A DNA stretch of 13,267 bases, taken from NCBI GenBank assembly GCA_000388065.2, contig KB932203.1. One strand, written 5' to 3'. Positions 1 through 13,267 of the stretch are shown here, piece by piece (the stretch's first letter is position 1; every line of letters starts with the position of its first letter). The notes under the pieces were generated by a model that saw only the letters and a program-made list of their open reading frames with translations, searched no databases and was not told the DNA's origin. This DNA comes from Fonticula alba ATCC 38817. Taxonomy: Eukaryota; Protista; Nucleariida. The position numbers and the translations under genes are program-made.

Positions 1-324
1 GGGGGCGAAATCCGCCTCCGGCCGATGCCTCCCAGCGCGGTGCCATGTGGCGGCCCGGCCGCCGGGTCCCGCGGTGCGCGCGCGCACACGCCCCGGAGTG
101 CCCCAGGCCTAAGCGCCCTCCCGGCCGCCGCGACGGGGAGAGCGGAGGGACCGGGGGGCCGAAGGCCCCGGCCGTTCTTGGGGGCGCCTCCTCCTTGGCG
201 CACGGTGCCGGGCCCGATCTCCCCCCCCCCTCCGGTCCTGGGGGCGGGAGGCCAGCGGGCCACCGCGCGGGCGCCCGTCCTCTCCCCGTCGGGGGGCGGC
301 ATGGAAGCCCCCTGCTCGGGCTGG

Positions 325-333
325 TGTGGGAAA
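325..333 (+). promoter_or_regulatory. Candidate CSL binding site TGTGGGAAA
   Basis: Exact match to the established YGTGRGAA consensus; function untested. Confidence 0.45.
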
Positions 334-432
334 ATCCTCCCTCCGCGGTCTCTCGGCGTGTCCACTCGGCCTGCCCCTCCCCCCCCGGTCCCCAGGCCCC
401 GGGCCGTACCGTGGGTACACGCCCCGCTGGCC

Positions 433-460
433 GGGGGGGGGGCGGGGGGGGGGGGGGGGG
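433..460 (+). repeat. Poly-G tract (G10 C G17)
   Basis: Read directly. Confidence 0.9.
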
Positions 461-865
461 CGCATTCAGGAAGCTTCCGCCACGCATGCCCAGTCATGCC
501 CCCGCCCCCCCTTCGGGCGTGGGTGCGAGCTGGCAAGGGCGACCGGTCGGGGGCCGGAAGCCCGGGAGCCGCCGCCCGGTGGTCGCCCAGTCTCCTGCTG
601 GCTTGGGCTCCGGGTTCTGTTGCTGTTCCTGTGTCCGGCCGCTGCTCGCCCTCTCCTGGCGCCCTCTGTTGTTCCCTCGCCCGGCATGGTGAGAGAATGC
701 AGCCGGGGGGACGGGCCAAGCAGCCGTGCCCGTGTCCGGGGCCGCCGCCGCCGCCGCCCCCCGGTCGGGGTACACACGCCTGACGCAACTGGAGATCTCC
801 CTGCCCCCTGCGCCGGCCGGCGTGCGGCCGCACGCGCGCGCCCTTGCCCCCGGCGTCGGGACTTC

Positions 866-875
866 TTTTCCCACC
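866..875 (-). promoter_or_regulatory. Candidate CSL binding site (GGTGGGAAAA on - strand)
   Basis: TTCCCAC core at 868-874; G rather than Y at the first consensus position. Confidence 0.35.
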
Positions 876-1094
876 CCAGGGCACCGGCCGCGAGCCAGTT
901 GTGTGCACGCGTGCTCGGAAGCCCCCCCCCCACCCGGCAGTCGGCCGCCAGGGACACAGACATGGGACATTCCTCCGTGTCTACCAGAGTGCCCCGGGCC
1001 GCAGCGGGGGCAGATCACATCCCCCGCCGGATGGTCCGGCCAACACACCCTCGCAATTGGGGTCTCTCGGCCACCGCGCGTTTCCCGCACCCCT

Positions 1095-1177
1095 GGGGAG
1101 GGGGAGGGGGGGGGGGGGGGGGGGGCGGGCGCCCCGGGGTTTTTTCTTTTCTCCCCCCCCCCCCCCCCCCGCCCCCC
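1095..1177. repeat. Poly-G / T-rich spacer / poly-C inverted homopolymer pair
   Basis: G20 at 1106-1125, T-rich 1140-1150, C18 at 1153-1170. Confidence 0.9.
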
Positions 1178-1439
1178 TCTGCCCCGACCCCGCCCAAGGA
1201 CACTCTTGAGGGGAAAACAGGTGGCACGCGGGAAAGCCCCCCGGGTGAGAGGGGCCGGGCGAGAGCAACGAGCACAAGCCGCAGGCTCCTGCTGCCAGGG
1301 AGGCGCGCGGGGTGCAGGGGGGGGGGGGCGCATCGACACACCGCAGGGAGGGGTCTACACTAGATCTCCCCCACCCCGGGGCGCGCCGTTGCACGCACAC
1401 CCGGGCCGTCGTGGGACATTCCTCCTGCCAGCCTGGCGC

Positions 1440-1447
1440 TTCCCACC
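1440..1447 (-). promoter_or_regulatory. Candidate CSL binding site (GGTGGGAA on - strand)
   Basis: TTCCCAC core at 1440-1446, about 290 nt before the ATG. Confidence 0.35.
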
Positions 1448-1730
1448 CCCGGCTGGTCGGCGCGCGGGAACGCCCCGCCCGGGGCATGAGAAATTTTTCG
1501 GCCGCCCGCAAACACCGGCCGGCCGCCGAGCTGGCACTTCCCTCCACGCCCGTAGTCGCGCCTGTTTCACCCCCTCCCCCCCCCCTCTACCTTTAGCTCT
1601 CTGAGAACCGTGGTCCTCCGTGCACTGCTTCCGGAAGGCCCTCCCCTCTCCTCCCTGCGCGACCTCCTGCTTCGTCCCCCTCCCCCGGCCCCCTCCCGGT
1701 TGAAGGGAACCCCCCTCCCTCCACGACGCA

Positions 1731-2247
1731 ATGACGTCCTCCGCTGCCCACCCCTCCAAGGCGGGCCGGCCTGCCTCCTCGGCCCCTGGCGATGGCCATC
1801 ATCTTCCCCCGGGCGACAGCCAGTCCTCATCCGCCGGGTCTGATCTCCCTGCCGGCCTCTCGGGCCTGACCCTGCTCCTGGACATTGTGGCCTCGCAGCG
1901 CGAGCAACTCGACGCTCCGGCCGCCGCCGCCGCCGCCGCCACCGCCAACCCTGCCGACACCACCAGCACCGGCACCACCACGGGCGCCACCGGCCCGGCC
2001 GCCCCCTCGGGCTCATCGCTCATCAAGGCGGAGCCCCTCTCGCCAGCCGTCCCCATGGCGGAATTCTCGCCAGGCGTGCCGGCTCCAGCCCCGGCCGGGG
2101 CCCCTGGCCCGGCCCCGATGGACCTGGCCACATCGCACCCGAAGAAGCGCAAGGCCTCCAGCGGTCCGACCGCCGATGCCGGGGTCGCGTCCAACGGCGA
2201 GGCGCCCCTGCCACTCGCCCGGCCGGTCAAACGCCACGCGCCGGCCG
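1731..2247 (+). CDS. CSL: CSL exon 1 (putative first coding exon; disordered N-terminal tail)
   Basis: ATG at 1731 has G at -3 and an in-frame TGA upstream at 1701-1703. Encodes LTLLLDIVAS, IKAEPLSP and PKKRK. Ends at G|GTACGC, phase 1. Confidence 0.75.
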
Positions 2248-5200
2248 GTACGCGCCATGGTCCTCCCCTTCTTGCTGGCAGCCCCCTGGGCTGACCGACC
2301 TGTGTGTCTCCGGCTCCCGGTGCTGACCCTCCCTCCCTCTCCCTCCCACGCAGACCTTGCCTCGGCCGACGCGATGGCTGTCATGAATGCCGGTGCGATT
2401 GTCCCCTCCACTGTGCCGATGATCTCCGCTTCGCTTCTCCCGAAGTCCAGCCCCGCCACTGGCCAGGGTGCGTTTCTTCCCTCCTGCCCACCAGTCCCGG
2501 CGCGATCGCCCACTGACCTGGCTGCTGCCCGTGCAGATCCCATGTTTGGACTGCTGGCCCCCTCGGCGTCGGACTCGCGCCTTGCGTCGCCGATGGTGTC
2601 CCCCTTGAACCTGCTCCCCCAGTCGGATCTCCTCTCTTCGATGGGTCTCTCCCTCGGCGGTGATGGCAGTCCGAATGCCAGCCCGGCACTGACCCAGCTC
2701 CTGACCGGCGGAGGCGCGGTCGGCGCGGTCGGCTCGGTCGGCTCGGTCGGCTCGGTCGGCTCGGTCGGCTCGGTCGGCTCGGTCGGCTCGGTCGGCTCGG
2801 TCAATACTTCCGGTGCGCGGCCCTTGACATGTCGTTCTTCCCTGCGCGTGGCCGTCCCACTCTTCCTGACACACACACACACACATGCACCCGCGCGCAC
2901 ACAACTTCCCTCCTGGACTCAGGCATCATTCCCGGTGTTCTGCCTGGCTGCTTCTCCAACCTGTCCATTCCGCTGGTGCAGAACGCCCAAGCCGGTACAC
3001 TGATCGGCAGTCCTGGCGGCGGCCAGACCATCCTCACTGTTCCATCCCCCCTCACCCAGCAGTTTGGTGCGCCACTCTCCACTTGCCCCCCCCGCCACAC
3101 GCACACGCACGCGCACACGCACACACTCACACGCCTGCATGTGCGCCGGTCACAGTTGCCACCGCCTCTCCCGGGAGCTCCATGGCACAAGTCGGCGCCG
3201 GGTCCTCGGCCGGGCGTGGGCTTCTCCTGCCGATGGCCGATCAGCGTCTGCCCTCCAGTCTCAACTCCGCCAATTCGCTCTTCCTCCAGAGCATCAATCC
3301 CCGACTGAATGCCGGGGCCATCGGGCCGGCCATGTCCCCGCCGGCCCTGCTCTCCCGGTCCCCCTCTTCGGACATCCTGGTCCCCTCCAGCATGCAGCAC
3401 TATTCGCTGGTGCTGCTGCACGCGTGCGTGGCCCAGAAGTCCTACGGCAGTGAGAAGCGCTTCCTCTGCCCGCCGCCGTTGATTCACTCGCTGCCGGCCT
3501 TGCCGTCGTTGCCGCTGGCCACCGATGCCACCGGCGCCGGTGGTGCTCCCGGCGGAGCGTCCGATGGCAAATCCCCGGCCAGTCGGCCGCACGTGCGCAT
3601 GCGCATCCTCCATGACGGCGCTCCGGCCCTCCTTTCGGCCAGCGGGGCCGGCATGTCGCCGGTTGTCACTCCGGGCGCCTCGCCGACCATCGGCTCCGGG
3701 CGTCGGGCCGGTGGCTCCTCCGGTCCGGCCTCCCCCGTGGGGTCGGCTTCTTCACTGGACAACCTGCTGCTTGGCGGGTCGACCGCCGCCGCCGCCGCCG
3801 GCCCCGGGGCCCAGGGCAGCGGCAAGCTTTCTGCCCGGCGTGGGGGATCTCCCTCCATGCAAAGTGGCGGCATGGTCAATCAGGCAGCCGTGACGGCCGC
3901 TGCGGCTGCCACCATCGAGCATCGCGAGTTTTTGGAATCCCCTCACCCCCTCGGGCCGCCGGCCGCGGTGCCTGGTGCCGCGCGGGCCGTCTTCAAGTAC
4001 ATGCACGTCAATGGCGCCGGGTCTGCCGACTCCACCGGCAATCGGTTTAAGTCCTTCATCCTCCGGGCTGGGGTGCGTACTGTTGTTGCATTTTCCCCTC
4101 TGCCCTCTTCCCCTTGTGTCCACTGGTGTCCCCCCCCCCCCCCCCCCCCCCCCCCCCAGGGTGGGTGGGGGGTTGTCGCCGCCGGGGAAAGTCATCGATC
4201 TTGGTCCCTTCGGGCTCTTGATGTTCGGTTGGGCATGTGCTTGCCAAGCGTGTCCCTGGTCTTTTGCTGACGCTCCTTCCTCGCTCCCCCCCCCCCGTCC
4301 CCCTCTTGTCTCCTCTCTTCTCGTGCGCACACGCACACACGCACACAAAAACACCCCCCGCTCCATGGCCAGGTGTACCTCGACGATCACTCGCCCCTGC
4401 TGTCCTTCGACAGCGCTCCGGTGTCCATCATCAGCAAGCCCTCCAAGAAGACCACGCGCATGCGCAATAACTTGCTGGTCATCACTTCCGGCGTGCTGGT
4501 GGCCCTCTTTAATCGTGTCAACTCGCAAACCGTCCGCACCAAGTACATGGCCATGGACCCGCCCGGGACCGGGGGCCCGGACACCGGCCCCACCGGCCTC
4601 CGACCGGCAACCGCCACCACCAGCGCCGGTTCCTCCGCCTCCAGCTCCTTCGACAACCTGGCGGCCGCGGCCGCGGCCTCCACCTCGGCCTCGACCGGTG
4701 GCAGCACGGCCGGTAGCTATCGGCTGGTGGCCCGGTCCGGCACCTGGGCTCCTTTCATCATCCATGGGATCGGTCGCGATGGGCGCCTCCTGCCCAAGGG
4801 CACCCCGCTGCTGTATAACATGCCGGTGGTTTTGGAAAGTCGCCCTCTGGAGGCGCTGCTCGATGTGGCCGAGGCCGGCCTCGATGAAGGCACCGCTGTC
4901 GGCGGGGGCGGTTCCATGATGGTGCTGTCGACGCCCGGTGCCGAGGCCACCGGCGGGATGGATGCTTCCGGGGGGGGTCTCCCCTCGAATGGCAGCGGGG
5001 CTGGCGGTGGCGGTGGCAATGGGGCCGGCGGCCTGCAGCAGGTGCCCACCCCCACCGGCGCTCTGTCCGATGTGATGATTCTGCGCCGGGTGACGCGTGA
5101 TGCCATGGTGCAAAATGGCCGCTCGGCCCCCTATGCCGATCAGCAAAATGCCGGCTCGGTGAGCCAGCTCCAAAAGGTGGCCCTGCAATTGGCCAATGCC

Positions 5201-6694
5201 CCGGCCGGGTGGCCGATCCTCGGCCCGGGTCCGGATGCCGGGACGACCGCCGGCGGTGGCGGTGGCGGCGCGACCGGCGCGACCGGCACGACCGCCGGCC
5301 ATGGTGGCTGCTTGCGCATGGTCCCCGGCCGTGATACCTCCCAGGCGGGGGTCAGTGTCGGGTGCTGCCGGCCACATTCCTCCCCGGCCGGGGGGCGTAA
5401 TGCCGCGGCGGCGCTTGACATGTGCTCCGCCTCCTGCCCGTGCGGCTGTGCTTCGGCCCAGGCGGCCGATGAGCCGCTCTATCTGAGCACCAGCAATGGC
5501 GATTCGCTGTGCTACCATCGGGCCATCTCCACCGGGACGGGCGATGCGGCCGGGTCCCGGCCCGTCGGGGGCAATGCCCCCGGCAGTGGTGGTGGGTGCA
5601 GCGGCCATGCGCCGGTGGATGGTGCGGCCGACCGGCGCGCGGGCATGGCACTCGAGCCGGCTGGCAGCGGCAGCAGCGGCTCGCTGGTCCCCTCGGAGCT
5701 GAACCTATGTGGGGTCCTGAGTGATGCCTTCATGTGCTGGACCATTGTCTGTGTGGATGCGCGCCATGTGCGCTTCTCCATCCGCACGGATGCCCCGGCG
5801 GCGGCGGTTGCGGCGGCGGCGGCAGCGGCGGCGGCGGCCGCCGTGTCCCCCAGCCCCAGCGGCGATCTTCTGCCGATGGTCGGCCGGCCGGCGCTGGTGA
5901 ACTTGCGCGCGCCGTCGCGATCGGTGGCCGGGGCACAGGCCAGCCCGCCGATGGCCGGCGCGCCGCCATCTGCCACTGGTCCTGGGTCCGATGTGACGGC
6001 ATTTGTCACCAGTGTCGGCGGCCGGCGGCGCGTGTCGCCCATCCCCCCCCCGACGGCTGGGACTCTCCTGCCGACGGCCGGGGGCGATGTCATGGGCGCC
6101 AGCTCCGGACAGTTGCCCTTTGGCGTCATGTCCGTCTCGTCCATGGCGACGGCCGTGACCTCGGATCTGGTTCCTGGTGGCGGCTCGCCGCTGCTCAGCA
6201 GCCAGTCGCAGCAGCTCCACCAGGCCTTCCATCATCATCACCTCGGCCTGCATCACCAGCACCATCAGCAGTCGCAGCAGCAGTCGCAGTCACAGTCGCA
6301 GCAGCAGTCGCAGCAGCAGTCGCACTCGGCACCTGGCACACCGTTGATGCCCCTGAACCTGCTCGGCGGGCATCAATTTGCCTTCAACGCGGGTGCCCCC
6401 GCCGGCAGCGGCAGCAGTGGCAATACCCAGAGCGGCATCAACACGCCCGTCATCTTGAGCCCGGTTCTGTCCGATGGCTCCGGGGCCGCGGTGTCCGGGG
6501 GCCTGCACCAATCTCTTGGTGCCGGGGCCGGGCTTTCGCTTGGCGATCTGTCCAAGCTGACCCCGACGCTGGACTCGCTGTCGAGCTCGCCGCTGTTTGG
6601 CGGGACTGCCTCAGGCAACAATGTCGGCCTGTCCGCCGCCAGCATGGGTCTCACCCTGGGCAATGTCAGCCAGCTGAGTGATATCCTGGCTGCT

Positions 6695-6754
<60 letters not shown>

Positions 6755-7279
6755 NNNNNNNNNNNNNNNNNNNNNNNNNNNNNNNNNNNNNNNNNNNNNN
6801 NNNNNNNNNNNNNNNNNNNNNNNNNNNNNNNNNNNNNNNNNNNNNNNNNNNNNNNNNNNNNNNNNNNNNNNNNNNNNNNNNNNNNNNNNNNNNNNNNNNN
6901 NNNNNNNNNNNNNNNNNNNNNNNNNNNNNNNNNNNNNNNNNNNNNNNNNNNNNNNNNNNNNNNNNNNNNNNNNNNNNNNNNNNNNNNNNNNNNNNNNNNN
7001 NNNNNNNNNNNNNNNNNNNNNNNNNNNNNNNNNNNNNNNNNNNNNNNNNNNNNNNNNNNNNNNNNNNNNNNNNNNNNNNNNNNNNNNNNNNNNNNNNNNN
7101 NNNNNNNNNNNNNNNNNNNNNNNNNNNNNNNNNNNNNNNNNNNNNNNNNNNNNNNNNNNNNNNNNNNNNNNNNNNNNNNNNNNNNNNNNNNNNNNNNNNN
7201 NNNNNNNNNNNNNNNNNNNNNNNNNNNNNNNNNNNNNNNNNNNNNNNNNNNNNNNNNNNNNNNNNNNNNNNNNNNNNNN

Positions 7280-7342
<63 letters not shown>

Positions 7343-7348
7343 TTCCGT

Positions 7349-7389
<41 letters not shown>

Positions 7390-7471
7390 GCAACAGCAGG
7401 CACAGCAAGCTCAACTCCAGCAACAATACCAACAGTATCGCCAACTCCAGCAGGCTCAACTTCAGCAGGCC

Positions 7472-7503
<32 letters not shown>

Positions 7504-7861
7504 GCAGCAGCAATCCTCCGAAGAGGATGCCCTCCTCTCGGGCGGCATTCAGCTCCAGCGCCTGCATCAGCTCCAGCAGCTCCAGCAATTCCGCCAGCTG
7601 CAGCTCCAGCAGCAGGCCAACATGGTCCAGCTCCAGGGGAGTGGCAGCAGTGGCAGCCTCCCTCTGATGGCATCAGTCTCCGGGGGACAGCAGTTGTCCT
7701 TCTCTCCGGGCTTTGGCAGCCTCATGTCCAATGGCCTGGCGGCCGATGCCAGTGGCGGGCTTCTCCTCTCGGGCAGCAGCTCCGACACGCTGGTGGTCGG
7801 TGATCGCTCGGACTCACAGGCAAGCCAGACGGGCGGCAACACGGCCGTCATGCGCACCTGA
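1731..7861 (+). CDS. CSL: CSL-family transcription factor (RBP-J/Su(H)/LAG-1; fungal Cbf11/Cbf12 family), five exons: 1731-2247, 2354-2812, 2923-3066, 3156-4072, 4373-7861
   Basis: The spliced translation shows the ordered CSL motifs: [22 protein letters not shown] (3413-3478; RBP-J [22 protein letters not shown]), FKYMHV...KSFIL (3992-4063), FDSAPVSIISKPSKK (4406-4450), VALFNRVNSQTVRTKYM (4499-4549; RBP-J VALFNRLRSQTVSTRYL), WAPFII (4745-4762), LYNMPVVLE (4811-4837), VMILRRV (5072-5092), VSQLQKVAL (5159-5185), LYLS (5477-5488), CWTIV..ARHVRF (5735-5776). Four GT-AG introns join different ORF-track frames with matching phases (1,1,1,0). Total 5526 nt, divisible by 3. Family call is from remembered motifs, not a database search. 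Confidence 0.95.
2248..2353 (+). other. Intron 1 (106 nt)
   Basis: GTACGC donor, CTGAC branch motif 2323-2327, pyrimidine tract, CGCAG acceptor. Splicing removes the TGA at 2292-2294 and G+AC gives Asp in frame. Confidence 0.8.
2354..2812 (+). CDS. CSL: CSL exon 2 (Ser/Pro/Leu-rich, ends in SVG repeats)
   Basis: Protein-like frame of ORF 1885..3003 (DLASADAMAV...SVNTS) bounded by AG| and G|GTGCGC. Confidence 0.8.
2716..2802 (+). repeat. Coding 9-nt minisatellite (KCGGTCGGC), about 9.7 copies, encoding (AVG)2(SVG)7SV
   Basis: GCGGTCGGC x2, then TCGGTCGGC x7, then TCGGTC; read directly. Confidence 0.97.
2813..2922 (+). other. Intron 2 (110 nt)
   Basis: GTGCGC donor, CTGAC 2866-2870, (AC)8 at about 2869-2885, CTCAG acceptor; phase 1 preserved. 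Confidence 0.85.
2923..3066 (+). CDS. CSL: CSL exon 3 (IIPGVLPG...LTQQF)
   Basis: Frame of ORF 2829..3308 bounded by AG| and G|GTGCGC; 144 nt, phase 1-1 symmetric. Confidence 0.8.
3067..3155 (+). other. Intron 3 (89 nt)
   Basis: GTGCGC donor, CAC/GCAC repeats 3097-3133, CTCAC branch-like motif 3126-3130, CACAG acceptor. Confidence 0.85.
3156..4072 (+). CDS. CSL: CSL exon 4 (most of the LAG1-type N-terminal DNA-binding domain)
   Basis: Contains [28 protein letters not shown] and FKYMHV...KSFILRAG; ends at GGG|GTGCGT, phase 0. Confidence 0.92.
4073..4372 (+). other. Intron 4 (300 nt)
   Basis: GTGCGT donor, CTGAC 4267-4271, CA-rich 4327-4353, CCAG acceptor. The junction FILRAG|VYLDDHSPLLSFDS aligns without a gap to remembered RBP-J [20 protein letters not shown]. 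Confidence 0.92.
4373..7861 (+). CDS. CSL: CSL exon 5 (end of NTD, beta-trefoil domain, His/Gln-rich and polyQ tail)
   Basis: Uninterrupted 1162-codon frame holding all beta-trefoil motifs; TGA at 7859-7861. The part after the N gap assumes the same frame and no hidden intron. Confidence 0.88.
6203..6325 (+). repeat. His/Gln/Ser low-complexity coding tract
   Basis: QSQQLHQAFHHHHLGLHHQHHQQSQQQSQSQSQQQSQQQSH, with CAGTCGCAG-type units. Confidence 0.9.
6695..7513 (+). repeat. CAG/CAA trinucleotide repeat (polyglutamine) spanning an assembly gap
   Basis: 20 Gln codons at 6695-6754, gap, 21 Gln codons at 7280-7342, further Q runs to 7513. Confidence 0.95.
6755..7279. other. Assembly gap (525 N)
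   Basis: N run flanked by CAG repeats on both sides. Confidence 1.
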
Positions 7862-7870
7862 GGTGGCCCT

Positions 7871-7930
7871 TGTGTGTGTGTGTGTGTGTGTGTATGACCC
7901 GCCGCACCGCACCGCGCCGCACCGCACACG
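7871..7930 (+). repeat. (TG)11 microsatellite followed by CGCAC pentamer repeats in the probable 3' UTR
   Basis: TG repeat 7871-7892, 10 nt after the stop; CGCAC units at about 7900-7930. Confidence 0.9.
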
Positions 7931-8668
7931 TGTCTCCCCTTCCTCTTTCTTCCTGCACCCCTCCTTTTGGATGTTTTTTTTTGTTCCGACATAGAATCCT
8001 GTGTCCTCCCCTTTTTGTACACACAGACCCCCCGCTTCAATAGATCCCCCTCAGGGTATGCACGCGCCCGCTGGCTTGGGCGCGCACCCTAGTCCCATCC
8101 GTTGTTGTCTCGTGTATTGTGTTCCTTCTCCCGCCGCCCCCGCCGCCCCGGGTATTCGCCTCACTTTGCGGCCTGCAGGGATGATGGGGGGGGGGGGGGG
8201 GCATCTGCGCCGATGGTGTATGTTTTTTTTTTTTTTTTTTTTATTTGGGCGCTCCCCCCTTCCTGCCTCAGAAGGTCGCCCTGCGCCCGGGACAGAGTCG
8301 CCCATGCAGAGCCGGAGCAGGAGGCACACGATGACGACATGGCGTCGAGTCGAACACGCTGATCAGCCGAACGCGCACAATATCACGCGCAGAGTCGAGT
8401 AAGCACGTGAGCACATCACCCATAGACTGTGGGTGATACGCTTGCCGACGGGCAACCAGGGTGCTCCACGCCCGGCAGCTCGCCGGCCTCGCCAGGACAC
8501 TCCCCCCCGCGTCCGCCTTCTGGGCGACGGCAGCGCGGCGGCGGCGGGTGCGGCGGACTTCGCCATGGGGTAGATTGGCTTTGAACGTGGGGGAGCCCCG
8601 GGGTCGCTGTGACCCCGCCCGCTCCCCGCCCCCCTCCGGTCTCCTCCCTTGTTGTCTCCTTCTCCCTG

Positions 8669-8780
8669 CCCCCCCCCCCCCACACCCCCCCCCCCCCCCC
8701 CCCCCCTCCCCCCCCCCCCCCCCCCCCCCCCCTTTTTTTCCCCTCCCCCCCCCCCCCCCCCCCCCCCCCGCCTCCCCCCC
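8669..8780 (+). repeat. Near-pure poly-C tract of about 110 nt
   Basis: Read directly; interrupted by ACA, single T bases and T7 (8733-8739). Confidence 0.9.
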
Positions 8781-9626
8781 GGGTTCCTGCCTCGACGCTG
8801 CGCGGTACGAGTCTACCTGGCGCAAGACCGCTCGCATATTGGCTGTCTAATCCTTGACTCATTAATAGCCCTGGGAGTGAAACCCTCCAGCCTTTGGCAA
8901 GTCAGTCTGGAGGCCCAGCAGAAAGTGGGCGGAAAAATATTCCGCACCCAGCCGGGATGCAGGTGTGGATTTCTGCCAGTAAATGTGAGTGTCATATATG
9001 TATATGCATCGTCATGGATGTGTGCTTGTGTATGTGTGTGTGTGTGTGCGTGTGAGTCTGGCCGCCGGAGCGGGAAAGGGCAGAAAGAGCACTGGGTGGC
9101 AGATGGGCTGGGGGGCCCTCTCCGACTTGCGGATGTGGACGCGCACAGGCGCGCGTATGGGGGATGTGTGCGCCTCTCCTCGTGGTACCTGGGCGCGGGG
9201 CAGGGGCCGGGCGGGGCCGAGGCGAACCCCAGGGCCGGAAAAACATCGGACAAGGGGGCAACCGTCCCCCCCGGGCGGGGCACAAAGGGTGACCTGCCGG
9301 TCTGCCGGCCTGGCCGCGAGGGGCCCGGCGTTTGCGCGCCTCCCGCCAGCCGGCGGCCGGCATCGGGGTGGCCCACGGAGGACCGGACGCCCATGTGGAT
9401 GGGCGCGCGGCCACACCAGCACCCAAGGCCCCGCTTGCCCGGCACCGGGGTCGAGGGGGACGGAGTGCGTGCATGCGTGTGTGCATGCATGGACATGGGG
9501 ATGTGAGGCACGGCGGAGGCACGAAGGGGCCGGGAGGGCAGGCCCTCTGGCTCTGGCGCCTCTTTTTTTTTTTTTTCCCCGGAGTGAGGCCCAGCCAGAA
9601 TGTTGATCGTGGTCAAGGGTCGCGGT

Positions 9627-9650
9627 GCGCGCGCGCGCGCGCGCGCGCGC
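9627..9650. repeat. (GC)12 dinucleotide repeat
   Basis: Read directly; self-complementary. Confidence 0.95.
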
Positions 9651-11538
9651 CTCCCTGGAGATGGGGACCGCATATTGGCTCGCCAAGACTTGGGGGCATC
9701 GCGCTTGCGCCATTGGCGCGACACAGGCGCGGAGCTCGTGAGCCCGCGAAGGAACAAGCCCGAGAGGTGCTGTGTAATGGAACATGCTCAATGCATGCGC
9801 AAGCCCCTTCACAGAGCACCTTCGAGCTTGGTGCGCATGGGATGAGGCAGGGGCGGCCGGGGGGCCCGGGCCGCCCGGTGCCTAATGGCCGGCCGAGTGG
9901 GACGATGCCGCACCAAGGTCGCCAGTGCGGGCCACCGGGCGAGTTTGGGCCGCAGGGAAGGCCGGGACGGGGCCCGAAGGCGGAGGCGCAGGAGGTGGGG
10001 GGCTTATCACTGGCGATCATGGGCCCCGGGGAATATGCCCGGCGCGCGAGACGGGCGGACATCCCACCTCGAAAGCGAGGGCGGCGCCAGAGGCTGACCG
10101 CCTCGAGGGAGAGAGGGAGAGAGAGAGGAGGGGCACCGACGTGTGACGTTACCCGGGTCATGCTGTGGTCAGTGCCAATCTCGGAGATGATCTTGACGCC
10201 GGCGCACGCACGCTGAGGGGTAGATACCGAGCGGCACACGAGGCGGCAGGCCGGCCGGCCGGCAGGCATGCGTGCATGCAGGCAAGCAGCCAGATGTGGT
10301 GGGCGCGTGTTGGGCGCATGTGCGCAGAGGCCGGGGAAGGGGGACAGGGTGCACAATGCTACACGTAAGAAAACTCGAGCGCCACACCCGGCGGGGGGTA
10401 ACTTGCGCCACGATCGTGCCCGGCGCACAGATACCGCACGGGGGTGTGCGTCACCATGACCACAGGTCTGCCCACAAACAGCCCCGCCGGACGAGGCAAG
10501 CACAGGCTTTCCCCTCATGGCCACCCTTCGGCCCCCGAGATACAGTGCATGCTGGGCCCGCGTCAGGCGCGTCAGTCAAAGCCGCTCCGGGGGCCAAGCA
10601 GGGAAATGTTGCCTCGAGAAAGGGCAGAACCGCGGCCCTTTCGCACGATGCCGGCGTCCAGGTGAGGCGAGGGCGGGGGGGGGGGACGCGGGGACCGCGA
10701 CCAAGAACTGAGCTCCTTCTCGGGAGGGAGGCAAGGGGGGTCGGCCTGAGGGGGAGGCGGGGGGGCGGGACGGACATTTACCTCATGGTCGCGCGGCTGG
10801 AGAAGATGGCAGGCAACAACCACCGGCGTGGCAGCGAGCGCTGAGTGGGGGGGGGCGGGAGAGGGAAGGGGGTAGCCGGGGCCAAGAAGCTTCGTCCTAC
10901 CCCCCACCCCCCCCCAGCCCCATACACACACATCCCGCAGGCCGGCCCGCCCCTCGGGTCGCTGGTTTCGCCGCGGCGTGGCCTGACCGTGAGGCCCTCG
11001 GCGGAGATAGCACCATGCAGGCACCCACCTCAGGAGGCGCGGCGCGGGCCGGCCTGCGGGGAGGGGTCATTCTCCATGGGGGGAGGCGGAGCGCGCCGTC
11101 GCCGCCTCTCATCTCGGTCGGGCCCGGGCCCGGGCCCGGCGCGAGTCGGAGATATTTGGGCGCCGGGTGGGATGGCGCACGGCTCGGGCGTAGGCCCGCG
11201 GCCTCCGATCGGGCCCGGTTGTTTGTTACACCCGAAGAGCGGGCCGCGACATCCGACAGCCGGACAGCCCGGGACAGCCGGCGCCAGAGCCGGGGACGGG
11301 AGTGCTCACGAGGCCGGCCGGCGCGACAGGCAGCCGCACCGCCACAACCTAGCTGCCTCCTGAGTGAATGAGTAAGGCGCGGTGTGGGCCAGCGGGCCAG
11401 TGGGTGTGTGGGATGTTGTTTCCAAGGGCGACCGAGCCCCTGTGTACCTTCAAAGCCCAACCCTGGGCGCCCCGGGGCCATCATGCCCATGCGCTTCGAT
11501 GCCTGCCCCCCCTCTTTGCACAGGCATGGGGGCGCCTT

Positions 11539-11753
11539 NNNNNNNNNNNNNNNNNNNNNNNNNNNNNNNNNNNNNNNNNNNNNNNNNNNNNNNNNNNNNN
11601 NNNNNNNNNNNNNNNNNNNNNNNNNNNNNNNNNNNNNNNNNNNNNNNNNNNNNNNNNNNNNNNNNNNNNNNNNNNNNNNNNNNNNNNNNNNNNNNNNNNN
11701 NNNNNNNNNNNNNNNNNNNNNNNNNNNNNNNNNNNNNNNNNNNNNNNNNNNNN
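11539..11753. other. Assembly gap (215 N)
   Basis: N run. Confidence 1.
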
Positions 11754-11884
11754 GCTGTGCCGCGGGCAGGCACCGCTGGCGTTTCGTCGGACCGAGCTGG
11801 CGGGGGCCACAGCGCTCTGAGGCCAGTCGCTAGGTTCGCGCGCGCGCCGGGCGTTTTCCTCGGTGCTCGTGCGCTTTCCCCCTT

Positions 11885-11910
11885 TCTCTCTCTCTCTCTT
11901 TCTCTCTCTC
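11885..11910 (+). repeat. (TC)n microsatellite
   Basis: Read directly. Confidence 0.85.
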
Positions 11911-12376
11911 GCTGTCGCCCCCCCCCCATGCCTGCCTGTTTCCTTCGAATGCAGCTTGAGTTGCGGCCCTTCATGACGCCTTCCGGCCCAGTCTCGCCAA
12001 CAGAGGCCCACTGTGGGAGCCGCCCAGCGTGGGGTCGCAAGGGCAGGGAGAGGCAGGCGTGTGTATGTGTGTGTGTGTATGGGGGGGGGGGGCATCCCCC
12101 GCCGCATGCATTCGCAGAGAGCGCCCCGCAAAAAGAAGGGGGCAAGTGACGAGAGGGGGGGGGGGGGCATCGCCGCGTCGGGGGCCAATGTGCCAGCAAT
12201 CGTGCGTCCAGCTCCCGAGGCTTGCGCTGGACTGCTTGTGTCGCTTGCCGGCCGGCCGGCGGACCGATGCGGCCCCGCGGCCCCCGCCTTCTTTTCTGGT
12301 CGGCGCGGGCGCGGGCACAGCCCCGCCGAGAGTGTCTGCCTCGTGCCGGCGGGACAGCTTGCAGCAGAGCTTCTTG

Positions 12377-12385
12377 CCCCCCCCG

Positions 12386-12418
<33 letters not shown>

Positions 12419-12451
12419 CCCCCCGCCCGCCGCGGGGGGGGGGGCGGGGGT

Positions 12452-12491
<40 letters not shown>

Positions 12492-12564
12492 CGGGCGGGG
12501 GGGGGGGGGGTCGGGTGGCGGGCCGGGCGGTGCTCTCCGTGGGGGGGGGGGGGGGGGGGGGGGG
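12377..12564. repeat. Poly-C / poly-G inverted homopolymer block
   Basis: C31 at 12386-12416, G40 at 12452-12491, G14 at 12497-12510, G24 at 12541-12564. Confidence 0.9.
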
Positions 12565-13214
12565 CCTCGGGACAAATCAGACCCCGCGCCTGGCGAGACA
12601 CCTTGTATTCCGGAAGTTCACGCTCTGTGGTAAGCCCCCGCCCCTCGGGATAGCGCAGCCAGATGCCCCTCGCCGGGCTGTCGATGTCCCCCCGCCCGGG
12701 GCTTTCCTATGTGGTGCGCGCGCGTGCGCACATACCTGCACACGCCCACCCGCAAGCCAGAGGGTGCCCATCCACGGGGCCCACGGGAACTGCTGTTTCC
12801 CCCGCACCGCGCATGTGAAGCCCACAATCACAATTACTCCCCGCTGATAATCTGGCCCCGCGCGATCTCACCCTCCCGGTGGAATCCCCACCGGCCATAG
12901 CTTGGTAGGCCGCGTGCCGCCGCCCCGGCCGCCCCCCACCCCCGCCCCGGCCGCCCGCCCCCGCTTTGGCCCAGTCACCGTCCTGCGGCACCACGCACCA
13001 GCCGAGACAACAACCACGCACTTGGCTGCCGCCCCCCCTGGCAGCCGCGCGGTGGACGCCGTGAGCCTGAGCCCCCCCCCCCCCCCCAGCCGCCGCAACT
13101 CCACTCCCGGGGGACGGGGGGCGGCCCACACAATGCGGGGGGCAGCGGCGCGCGGGGATCCCATCGGACGCCGCGCGGTCCCCCAGCCCACCCCGCCGAC
13201 GGGCGCGGCCCCGC

Positions 13215-13220
13215 CCCCCG

Positions 13221-13267
<47 letters not shown>
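13215..13267 (+). repeat. Poly-C run at window end
   Basis: Read directly; length may be unreliable. Confidence 0.85.

Follow-up and report, generated by a model that had tools for sequence, protein, structure and literature searches.

Clustered candidate CSL response elements upstream of a CSL gene of Fonticula alba, and a recurrent CSL word in the promoters of its fungal relatives

CSL proteins are familiar mainly from animal Notch signalling, of which they form the nuclear end; their role before Notch existed is an open question. The subject here is a stretch of 13,267 nucleotides of Fonticula alba ATCC 38817 (contig KB932203.1 of assembly GCA_000388065.2; G+C ∼72%; hereafter the window), in which a CSL gene is preceded by three exact copies of the CSL core GTGGGAA. 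Are these copies the means by which a CSL gene is controlled by a CSL protein? To our knowledge no Notch input is to be expected in Fonticula, and our literature search found no paper on CSL in this organism. Consensus CSL sites are clustered above chance at the CSL gene's own locus, in non-genic DNA upstream of an expressed CSL gene. The observations that bear directly on the question are the sites, their local excess, the expression of the gene, the intact DNA-contact motifs of its product and the recurrence of the core in fungal relatives. On balance, and with considerable reserve, we favor a functional CSL feedback on the CSL gene through these candidate sites (self-regulation, possibly involving a paralogue). 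The three copies of GTGGGAA in the 1.7 kb upstream of the gene would then be CSL response elements, through which a CSL protein of Fonticula would feed back on transcription of the CSL gene; this protein may be the one that the gene itself encodes, perhaps acting with a second CSL paralogue. Binding to the sites, an effect on transcription and the sign of the loop are the steps that we infer.

All three copies listed in a preliminary description of the window, made from its letters alone, are present:

326 to 332, plus strand: exact CSL core GTGGGAA, contexts TGTGGGAAA and TGTGGGAAAATCC, at −1405 from the ATG, overlapping copy 1 of a 14-bp element
868 to 874, minus strand: exact CSL core GTGGGAA, minus-strand context GGGGTGGGAAAAG, at −863 from the ATG, within a shared 13-mer TTCCCACCCCAGG
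1440 to 1446, minus strand: exact CSL core GTGGGAA, minus-strand context GGGGTGGGAAGCG, at −291 from the ATG

There is no fourth copy of GTGGGAA on either strand of the window; the word is thus also missing from ∼5.2 kb of comparable non-coding sequence that follows the CSL gene. The preliminary description had stated that the other 11.5 kb were free of exact cores of either kind, which is correct for GTGGGAA and incorrect for the second consensus form, GTGAGAA:

3450 to 3456, plus strand: GTGAGAA inside the CSL coding sequence, within the GSEKRF codons and spelled by the G-S-E-K part of the DNA-binding motif

This occurrence is probably a coincidence. The preferred pyrimidine precedes the core at site 326 only, a G standing there at sites 868 and 1440; since a purine in this position is common among the fungal CSL sites described below, this is a weak objection to the latter two.

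How much such a cluster means depends on what the surrounding DNA would produce by itself, the background for the expectations in this stretch being drawn from the window alone rather than from the genome. Three copies are nothing unusual for the window as a whole (mean of 1.67 in dinucleotide shuffles, with 49 of the 200 shuffles reaching three). The excess is local. For the 1,730 bp that precede the ATG the expectation is 0.14 by mononucleotide composition and 0.27 by dinucleotide shuffles, for which the probability of at least three copies is 0.002; whether or not the upstream stretch was included in their training, Markov models of order 0–4 give 0.16–0.29 expected copies and P = 0.001–0.003, a range against which the earlier hand estimate of ∼0.15 was a little low but fair. 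The word is also unusual among its peers: three copies in the same stretch are reached by only 2 of the 105 words obtained by permuting its letters and by only 4 of 2,240 canonical seven-letter words with three A/T letters. The opposing possibility is that the three copies are a coincidence in low-complexity intergenic DNA rich in G- and C-runs, noticed since the motif was sought beside a CSL gene. The unremarkable count over the whole window agrees with this, as do the GGGG/CCCC contexts of two of the sites, which are typical of the region, and a Markov model of order 5, which gives higher values (0.45 expected copies, P = 0.011). Very many windows were scanned as well, so that some cases at P ∼0.002 are to be expected. 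On the other side, P for the upstream stretch stays at or below 0.003 in all shuffles and in Markov orders 0–4, the similar downstream DNA lacks the word, and 11 of 12 fungal relatives show a strong and specific enrichment of the motif in the corresponding position, so that the prior for function is higher. Taken together, these points make coincidence an unlikely explanation, although one of some weight.

The gene itself, for which the following features were established, is expressed.

1731 to 7861, plus strand: CSL gene, ATG at 1731, six exons
1731 to 2247, 2354 to 2467, 2537 to 2812, 2923 to 3066, 3156 to 4072 and 4373 to 7861, plus strand: CSL exons, joints placed at GT..AG
1557 to 1730, plus strand: minimum 5′ untranslated region, the spliced RNA contigs starting at 1557 (run X1) and 1596 (run X3)
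6755 to 7279 and 11539 to 11753: assembly gaps

All five introns are of the GT..AG type, and the exons form a single open frame of 1,818 codons, 175 of which stand for unknown residues, the first of the gaps falling within a polyglutamine tract. Over positions 1–6000, the part of the window inspected for RNA coverage, contigs from two 2012 runs (X1 and X3) extend from 1557 to 6000 and carry the five GT..AG joints; they thus derive from RNA, and the CSL gene is expressed and spliced. Since these contigs start at ∼1557, all three GTGGGAA sites lie upstream of the assembled transcript, at −1231 (site 326), −689 (site 868) and −117 (site 1440) from its 5′-most end. Contig depth in the bin 1401–1600 exceeds what the listed contigs explain, and site 1440 may therefore sit very near the transcription start. 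A hidden gene within 1–1730 was considered and rejected: five long open reading frames in this interval have no Pfam match, and RNA contig depth over 201–1200 is zero.

Whether the product could recognize such sites was judged from its conserved blocks. The first block of the Pfam LAG1-DNAbind model (PF09271) is matched at 43.6 bits (cut-off 25), and the end block of the same model at 22.9 bits, beyond a long low-complexity insertion and an intron. The DNA-contact motifs HAxVAQKSYGxEKRFxCPPP, SKPSKK and ALFNRxxSQTV, part of which (KPSKK and FNR..SQ) the preliminary description had already called intact, are so when aligned by phmmer to the solved RBP-J, Su(H) and LAG-1 chains; in the same comparison the segment IISKPSKK...ALFNRVNSQTVRTKYM aligns to all three proteins. 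The Pfam BTD model (PF09270) gave no match in the CSL protein even at E ≤ 10; residues 11–62 of exon 6 align by phmmer to the start of the BTD of solved CSLs. After the CWTIV block a general Pfam scan, which included no search aimed at it, returned no match to a C-terminal Rel-like/TIG domain. All database relatives found for the protein are fungal CSLs, several of them named cbf11 by their source, and the segment NSQTVRTKYM is common to them. An Amanita CSL matches the Fonticula protein in three colinear blocks, with 71% identity over 52 residues. The gene thus appears most like fungal Cbf11-named CSLs, and an F1-like class may be taken as a lead only, by best hits and source names.

The arginine of the FNR motif, at protein position ∼704, is invariant across nine aligned fungal relatives, and we take it to be the equivalent of mouse R218, a mapping made by the numbering of the crystallized construct. 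Mutation of the conserved BTD arginine (R218 in mouse, R318 in Cbf11, R644 in Cbf12) abolishes DNA binding in mouse RBP-J and in Cbf11 and Cbf12 (PMC3598750), the two CSL paralogues of the fission yeast S. pombe. In vitro the canonical element is recognized by the CSLs of fission yeast (PMC3598750); both paralogues bind the same element there, and they act antagonistically (PMC3598750, PMC4569565). This precedent lends some plausibility to a version of events in which the Fonticula sites are real CSL elements used by another CSL paralogue, forming a cascade or a switch and not a self-loop, and the heavy fragmentation of the window's CSL protein by low-complexity insertions points the same way. 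The DNA-contact blocks of that protein are, however, intact, which leaves no reason to exclude self-binding, and we consider exclusive control by a paralogue improbable.

A comparison of the regions upstream of orthologues, proposed in the preliminary description as a check, turned out in favor of a CSL function for the word. Eleven basidiomycete CSL loci with 6 kb of flank each, obtained through protein searches and representing the closest relatives of this gene, were compared (Amanita and Tilletia, two each, and Parajaminaea, Pseudohyphozyma, Trametes, Suillus, Russula, Pleurotus and Coniferiporia). The GTG(G/A)GAA counts in these loci were as follows:

CSL upstream intergenic DNA (up to 500 bp): 20 sites in 4,152 bp, 4.8 per kb
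51 control promoters of the same loci: 3 sites in ∼14.8 kb, 0.20 per kb
Other intergenic DNA of the same loci: 6 sites in ∼15.7 kb, 0.38 per kb
Genes of the same loci: 30 sites in ∼127 kb, 0.24 per kb

The motif is hence ∼20-fold enriched in basidiomycete CSL promoters over control promoters, and a general enrichment of the word in fungal promoters can be rejected from the control density of 0.20 per kb. At least one site occurs in 10 of the 11 CSL promoters as compared with 6 of the 51 controls (two of these six use the CSL intergenic region itself), and at least two sites in 7 of 11 versus none of 51. When one-letter variants of the core were counted, a clear enrichment was seen only for GTGGGAA (14 observed, 0.53 expected) and GTGAGAA (6 observed, 0.50 expected), which is exactly the known CSL specificity. 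In an unbiased ranking of 2,942 seven-letter words GTGGGAA came out as the most enriched in the fungal CSL promoters. The orthologue from Phycomyces has one GTGGGAA at −191, so that one or more sites are present in the 500 bp before the gene in 11 of 12 fungal relatives (the 11 basidiomycetes and Phycomyces).

The fungal sites are also arranged in a consistent manner. Sixteen of the 20 read TTCYCAC on the sense strand, they lie from −33 to −352 relative to the ATG, and the majority are found 10–70 bp downstream of a TATA-like box. Sites have persisted within each of the genera Amanita and Tilletia (two species each); among orders their number and spacing vary, which argues for maintenance over simple inheritance. 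As the species are related, Poisson P-values overstate the independence of these counts. By lineage, Agaricomycetes, Ustilaginomycotina and Mucoromycota are positive and one member of Pucciniomycotina is negative; the pattern of predicted own-promoter sites is clear even when counted in this way. The 2007 survey of fungal CSLs makes no mention of own-promoter sites, and our literature search found no publication of the fungal pattern.

The Fonticula locus compares with this pattern unevenly. It shares its word with the fungal Cbf11-like promoters, in which the sites closely precede the genes for the nearest protein relatives and are mostly oriented alike (sense strand, TTCYCAC); site 1440 fits both the fungal position range and the orientation. 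As it resembles the fungal sites in orientation and in its spacing to the ATG, the proximal site 1440 is the likeliest of the three to function. In contrast to the fungal sites, packed between −33 and −352, those of Fonticula are spread over 1.1 kb, two of them being distal; and whereas the fungal sites mostly lie near a TATA-like box, no TATA box was seen in the Fonticula upstream stretch.

The same comparison bears on two near matches that had been counted with the cluster and that are present at the positions given for them:

410 to 417, plus strand: near match CGTGGGTA; its core GTGGGTA was counted 2 times in the fungal CSL promoters, where 0.55 would be expected
1410 to 1417, plus strand: near match CGTGGGAC, part of copy 3 of the 14-bp element; its core GTGGGAC occurs once in the fungal CSL promoters against 0.74 expected

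Neither GTGGGAC nor GTGGGTA is enriched in fungal CSL promoters, and the two near matches, left without support as CSL sites, were rejected as weak members of the cluster.

Several other features of the fungal loci were recorded. In the agaricomycete CSL promoters (seven loci) a TATA-like box is followed by one to four TTCYCAC boxes at approximately −120 to −230 from the ATG; two more words are shared further upstream, one of the GGGACCCCG type (GACCCCG, with 9 copies where 0.72 are expected), the other CGTGAGA (12 copies, 0.67 expected). The gene order is conserved in this group, namely DEAD helicase, TM7S3-like gene, small open reading frame, CSL and pyruvate kinase. Two database proteins in which CSL domains are joined to those of pyruvate kinase are probably merged gene models, given that the agaricomycete CSL gene has pyruvate kinase as its conserved neighbor on the downstream side.

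The Fonticula upstream stretch contains further repeated words, which raise the question of whether the GTGGGAA copies belong to some other element.

327 to 340, plus strand: 14-bp element, copy 1, TGGGAAAATCCTCC, with 2 mismatches to copies 2 and 3, overlapping site 326
963 to 976, plus strand: 14-bp element, copy 2, TGGGACATTCCTCC, exact
1412 to 1425, plus strand: 14-bp element, copy 3, TGGGACATTCCTCC, exact
216 to 222, plus strand: GATCTCC, copy 1, 110 bp before site 326
793 to 800, plus strand: AGATCTCC, copy 2, with GATCTCC at 794, within the palindrome GGAGATCTCC, 75 bp before site 868
1362 to 1369, plus strand: AGATCTCC, copy 3, with GATCTCC at 1363, 78 bp before site 1440

The word AGATCTCC is absent from the rest of the window, and a 13-mer TTCCCACCCC(A/C)GG is common to sites 868 and 1440. 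Conceivably, the functional units are the 14-bp TGGGA(A/C)A(A/T)TCCTCC and GATCTCC, with three copies each, serving another factor, and GTGGGAA is in part their by-product. The 14-mer is indeed in excess, with 6 matches at up to 3 mismatches in the window versus 1.5 expected and none of 200 shuffles reaching 6. Its third copy, that at 327, overlaps a CSL core, and every upstream copy of GATCTCC stands 75–110 bp before a GTGGGAA. The repeats are not relics of a recent duplication, since the neighborhoods are otherwise unalignable; recent segmental duplication as the origin of the repeated sites was rejected on the same ground, MAFFT aligning short motifs only. However, sites 868 and 1440 lie outside the 14-mer, and the core of the latter, GTGGGAC, is unenriched in fungal CSL promoters while GTGGGAA is enriched. 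Such a module would moreover be compatible with a CSL function, since CSL and partner sites may be combined in it, as they are in enhancers of animals. That it would belong to another factor instead is, in our estimation, a slight chance. The upstream stretch as a whole can be described as three loose composite modules ∼570–580 bp apart, an arrangement that is compatible with a regulatory region and is no proof of one. By resemblance only, the 14-bp element TGGGACATTCCTCC holds CATTCC (similar to TEA-domain sites) and fits GGGRNWYYCC (similar to κB sites).

A number of points weigh against feedback through the three sites. The local P would be too optimistic if GTGGGAA-like words were common in the G/C-run-rich promoters of this genome, and, as the case was picked from a large scan, the nominal P of 0.002 is weaker than it appears. 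Two of the sites share one 13-mer and the third overlaps the 14-bp repeat, so they may be non-independent or parts of other elements. Only site 1440 falls inside the fungal range, a circumstance that also suits coincidence; alone it amounts to 1 copy against ∼0.08 expected per 500 bp. Among the relatives, the promoter of Pseudohyphozyma, which provides the best single protein match, is without a site. Finally, the protein is very diverged, its BTD unmatched and its LAG1-DNAbind region split by insertions, so that its DNA specificity is assumed.

Feedback of a CSL protein on its own gene has been described in other organisms. In S. pombe, Cbf12 occupies its own promoter, as seen by chromatin immunoprecipitation on microarrays (ChIP-chip), and ectopic Cbf12 lifts native Cbf12-GFP more than three-fold (PMC3516552, Kwon et al. 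2012); no Cbf12 motif could be derived from the ChIP-chip data (PMC3516552). Genes of lipid metabolism bound by Cbf11 carry a Su(H)-like motif (PMC4569565). The likeness to Fonticula lies in a Notch-independent CSL of a unicellular organism on the fungal side of the opisthokonts, Cbf12 acting on its own promoter, and in the element, GTGGGAA being the canonical one recognized by fission-yeast CSLs in vitro. Unlike the Cbf12 loop, for which occupancy and induction of the native gene were measured, that of Fonticula is a predicted one; and unlike Cbf12, the Fonticula gene resembles the Cbf11-like group (by best hits and source names), in an organism outside Fungi proper. As regards the Notch-independent loop proposed in the preliminary description, the sites are real, locally enriched and upstream of an expressed gene, while the novelty that it implied was overstated in view of the published S. 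pombe Cbf12 loop (PMC3516552).

The Drosophila parallel invoked at the same time, autoregulation of Su(H) through clustered sites, is borne out by the literature: the autoregulatory socket enhancer (ASE, ASE5), immediately 3′ of the gene, contains five Su(H) sites (PMC3390367). In both cases consensus CSL sites are clustered at the CSL gene's own locus, and in Drosophila the cluster maintains expression. ASE5 differs in being downstream, cell-type specific and Notch-started, with five high-affinity sites and partner motifs, as opposed to three upstream sites in Fonticula. Overall, the kind of circuit is already known from S. pombe and flies, and by analogy Fonticula would offer one more candidate example.

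Could own-promoter sites then be an old property of these genes? Their occurrence in Basidiomycota, a mucoromycete and Fonticula leads us to suggest, quite tentatively and short of actually favoring it, that own-promoter CSL sites may be ancestral in the Cbf11-like CSL genes of Holomycota. If this were true, CSL self-regulation would predate the split between fungi and the amoeba lineage; it would not depend on Notch and would have persisted while its sites turned over. In relation to the role of CSL before Notch, own-promoter sites spanning fungi and their amoeboid sister lineage would point to an old Notch-independent switch. The by-product of the comparison, a conserved own-promoter CSL box of fungal Cbf11-like genes, is of more interest in this respect, as it makes an ancient self-loop directly testable.

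The CSL coding sequence contains in-frame tandem repeats of a 9-bp unit, (GGCTCGGTC)n, in exon 3 (2716–2800), and a long CAG/CAA polyglutamine tract (6690–7530) that spans the assembly gap 6755–7279. The more than 5 kb on the 3′ side of the gene (7862–13267) show no convincing gene by eye and contain homopolymer runs, GT/CA microsatellites and the second gap. In the upstream stretch, ∼600 bp before the CSL ATG, a switch in composition is found:

1095 to 1183, no strand assigned: G-run, T-rich patch and C-run in succession

Very long G-, T- and C-runs of this sort recur in the non-coding DNA, at 1095–1183, 8187–8243, 12360–12570 and 13200–13267.

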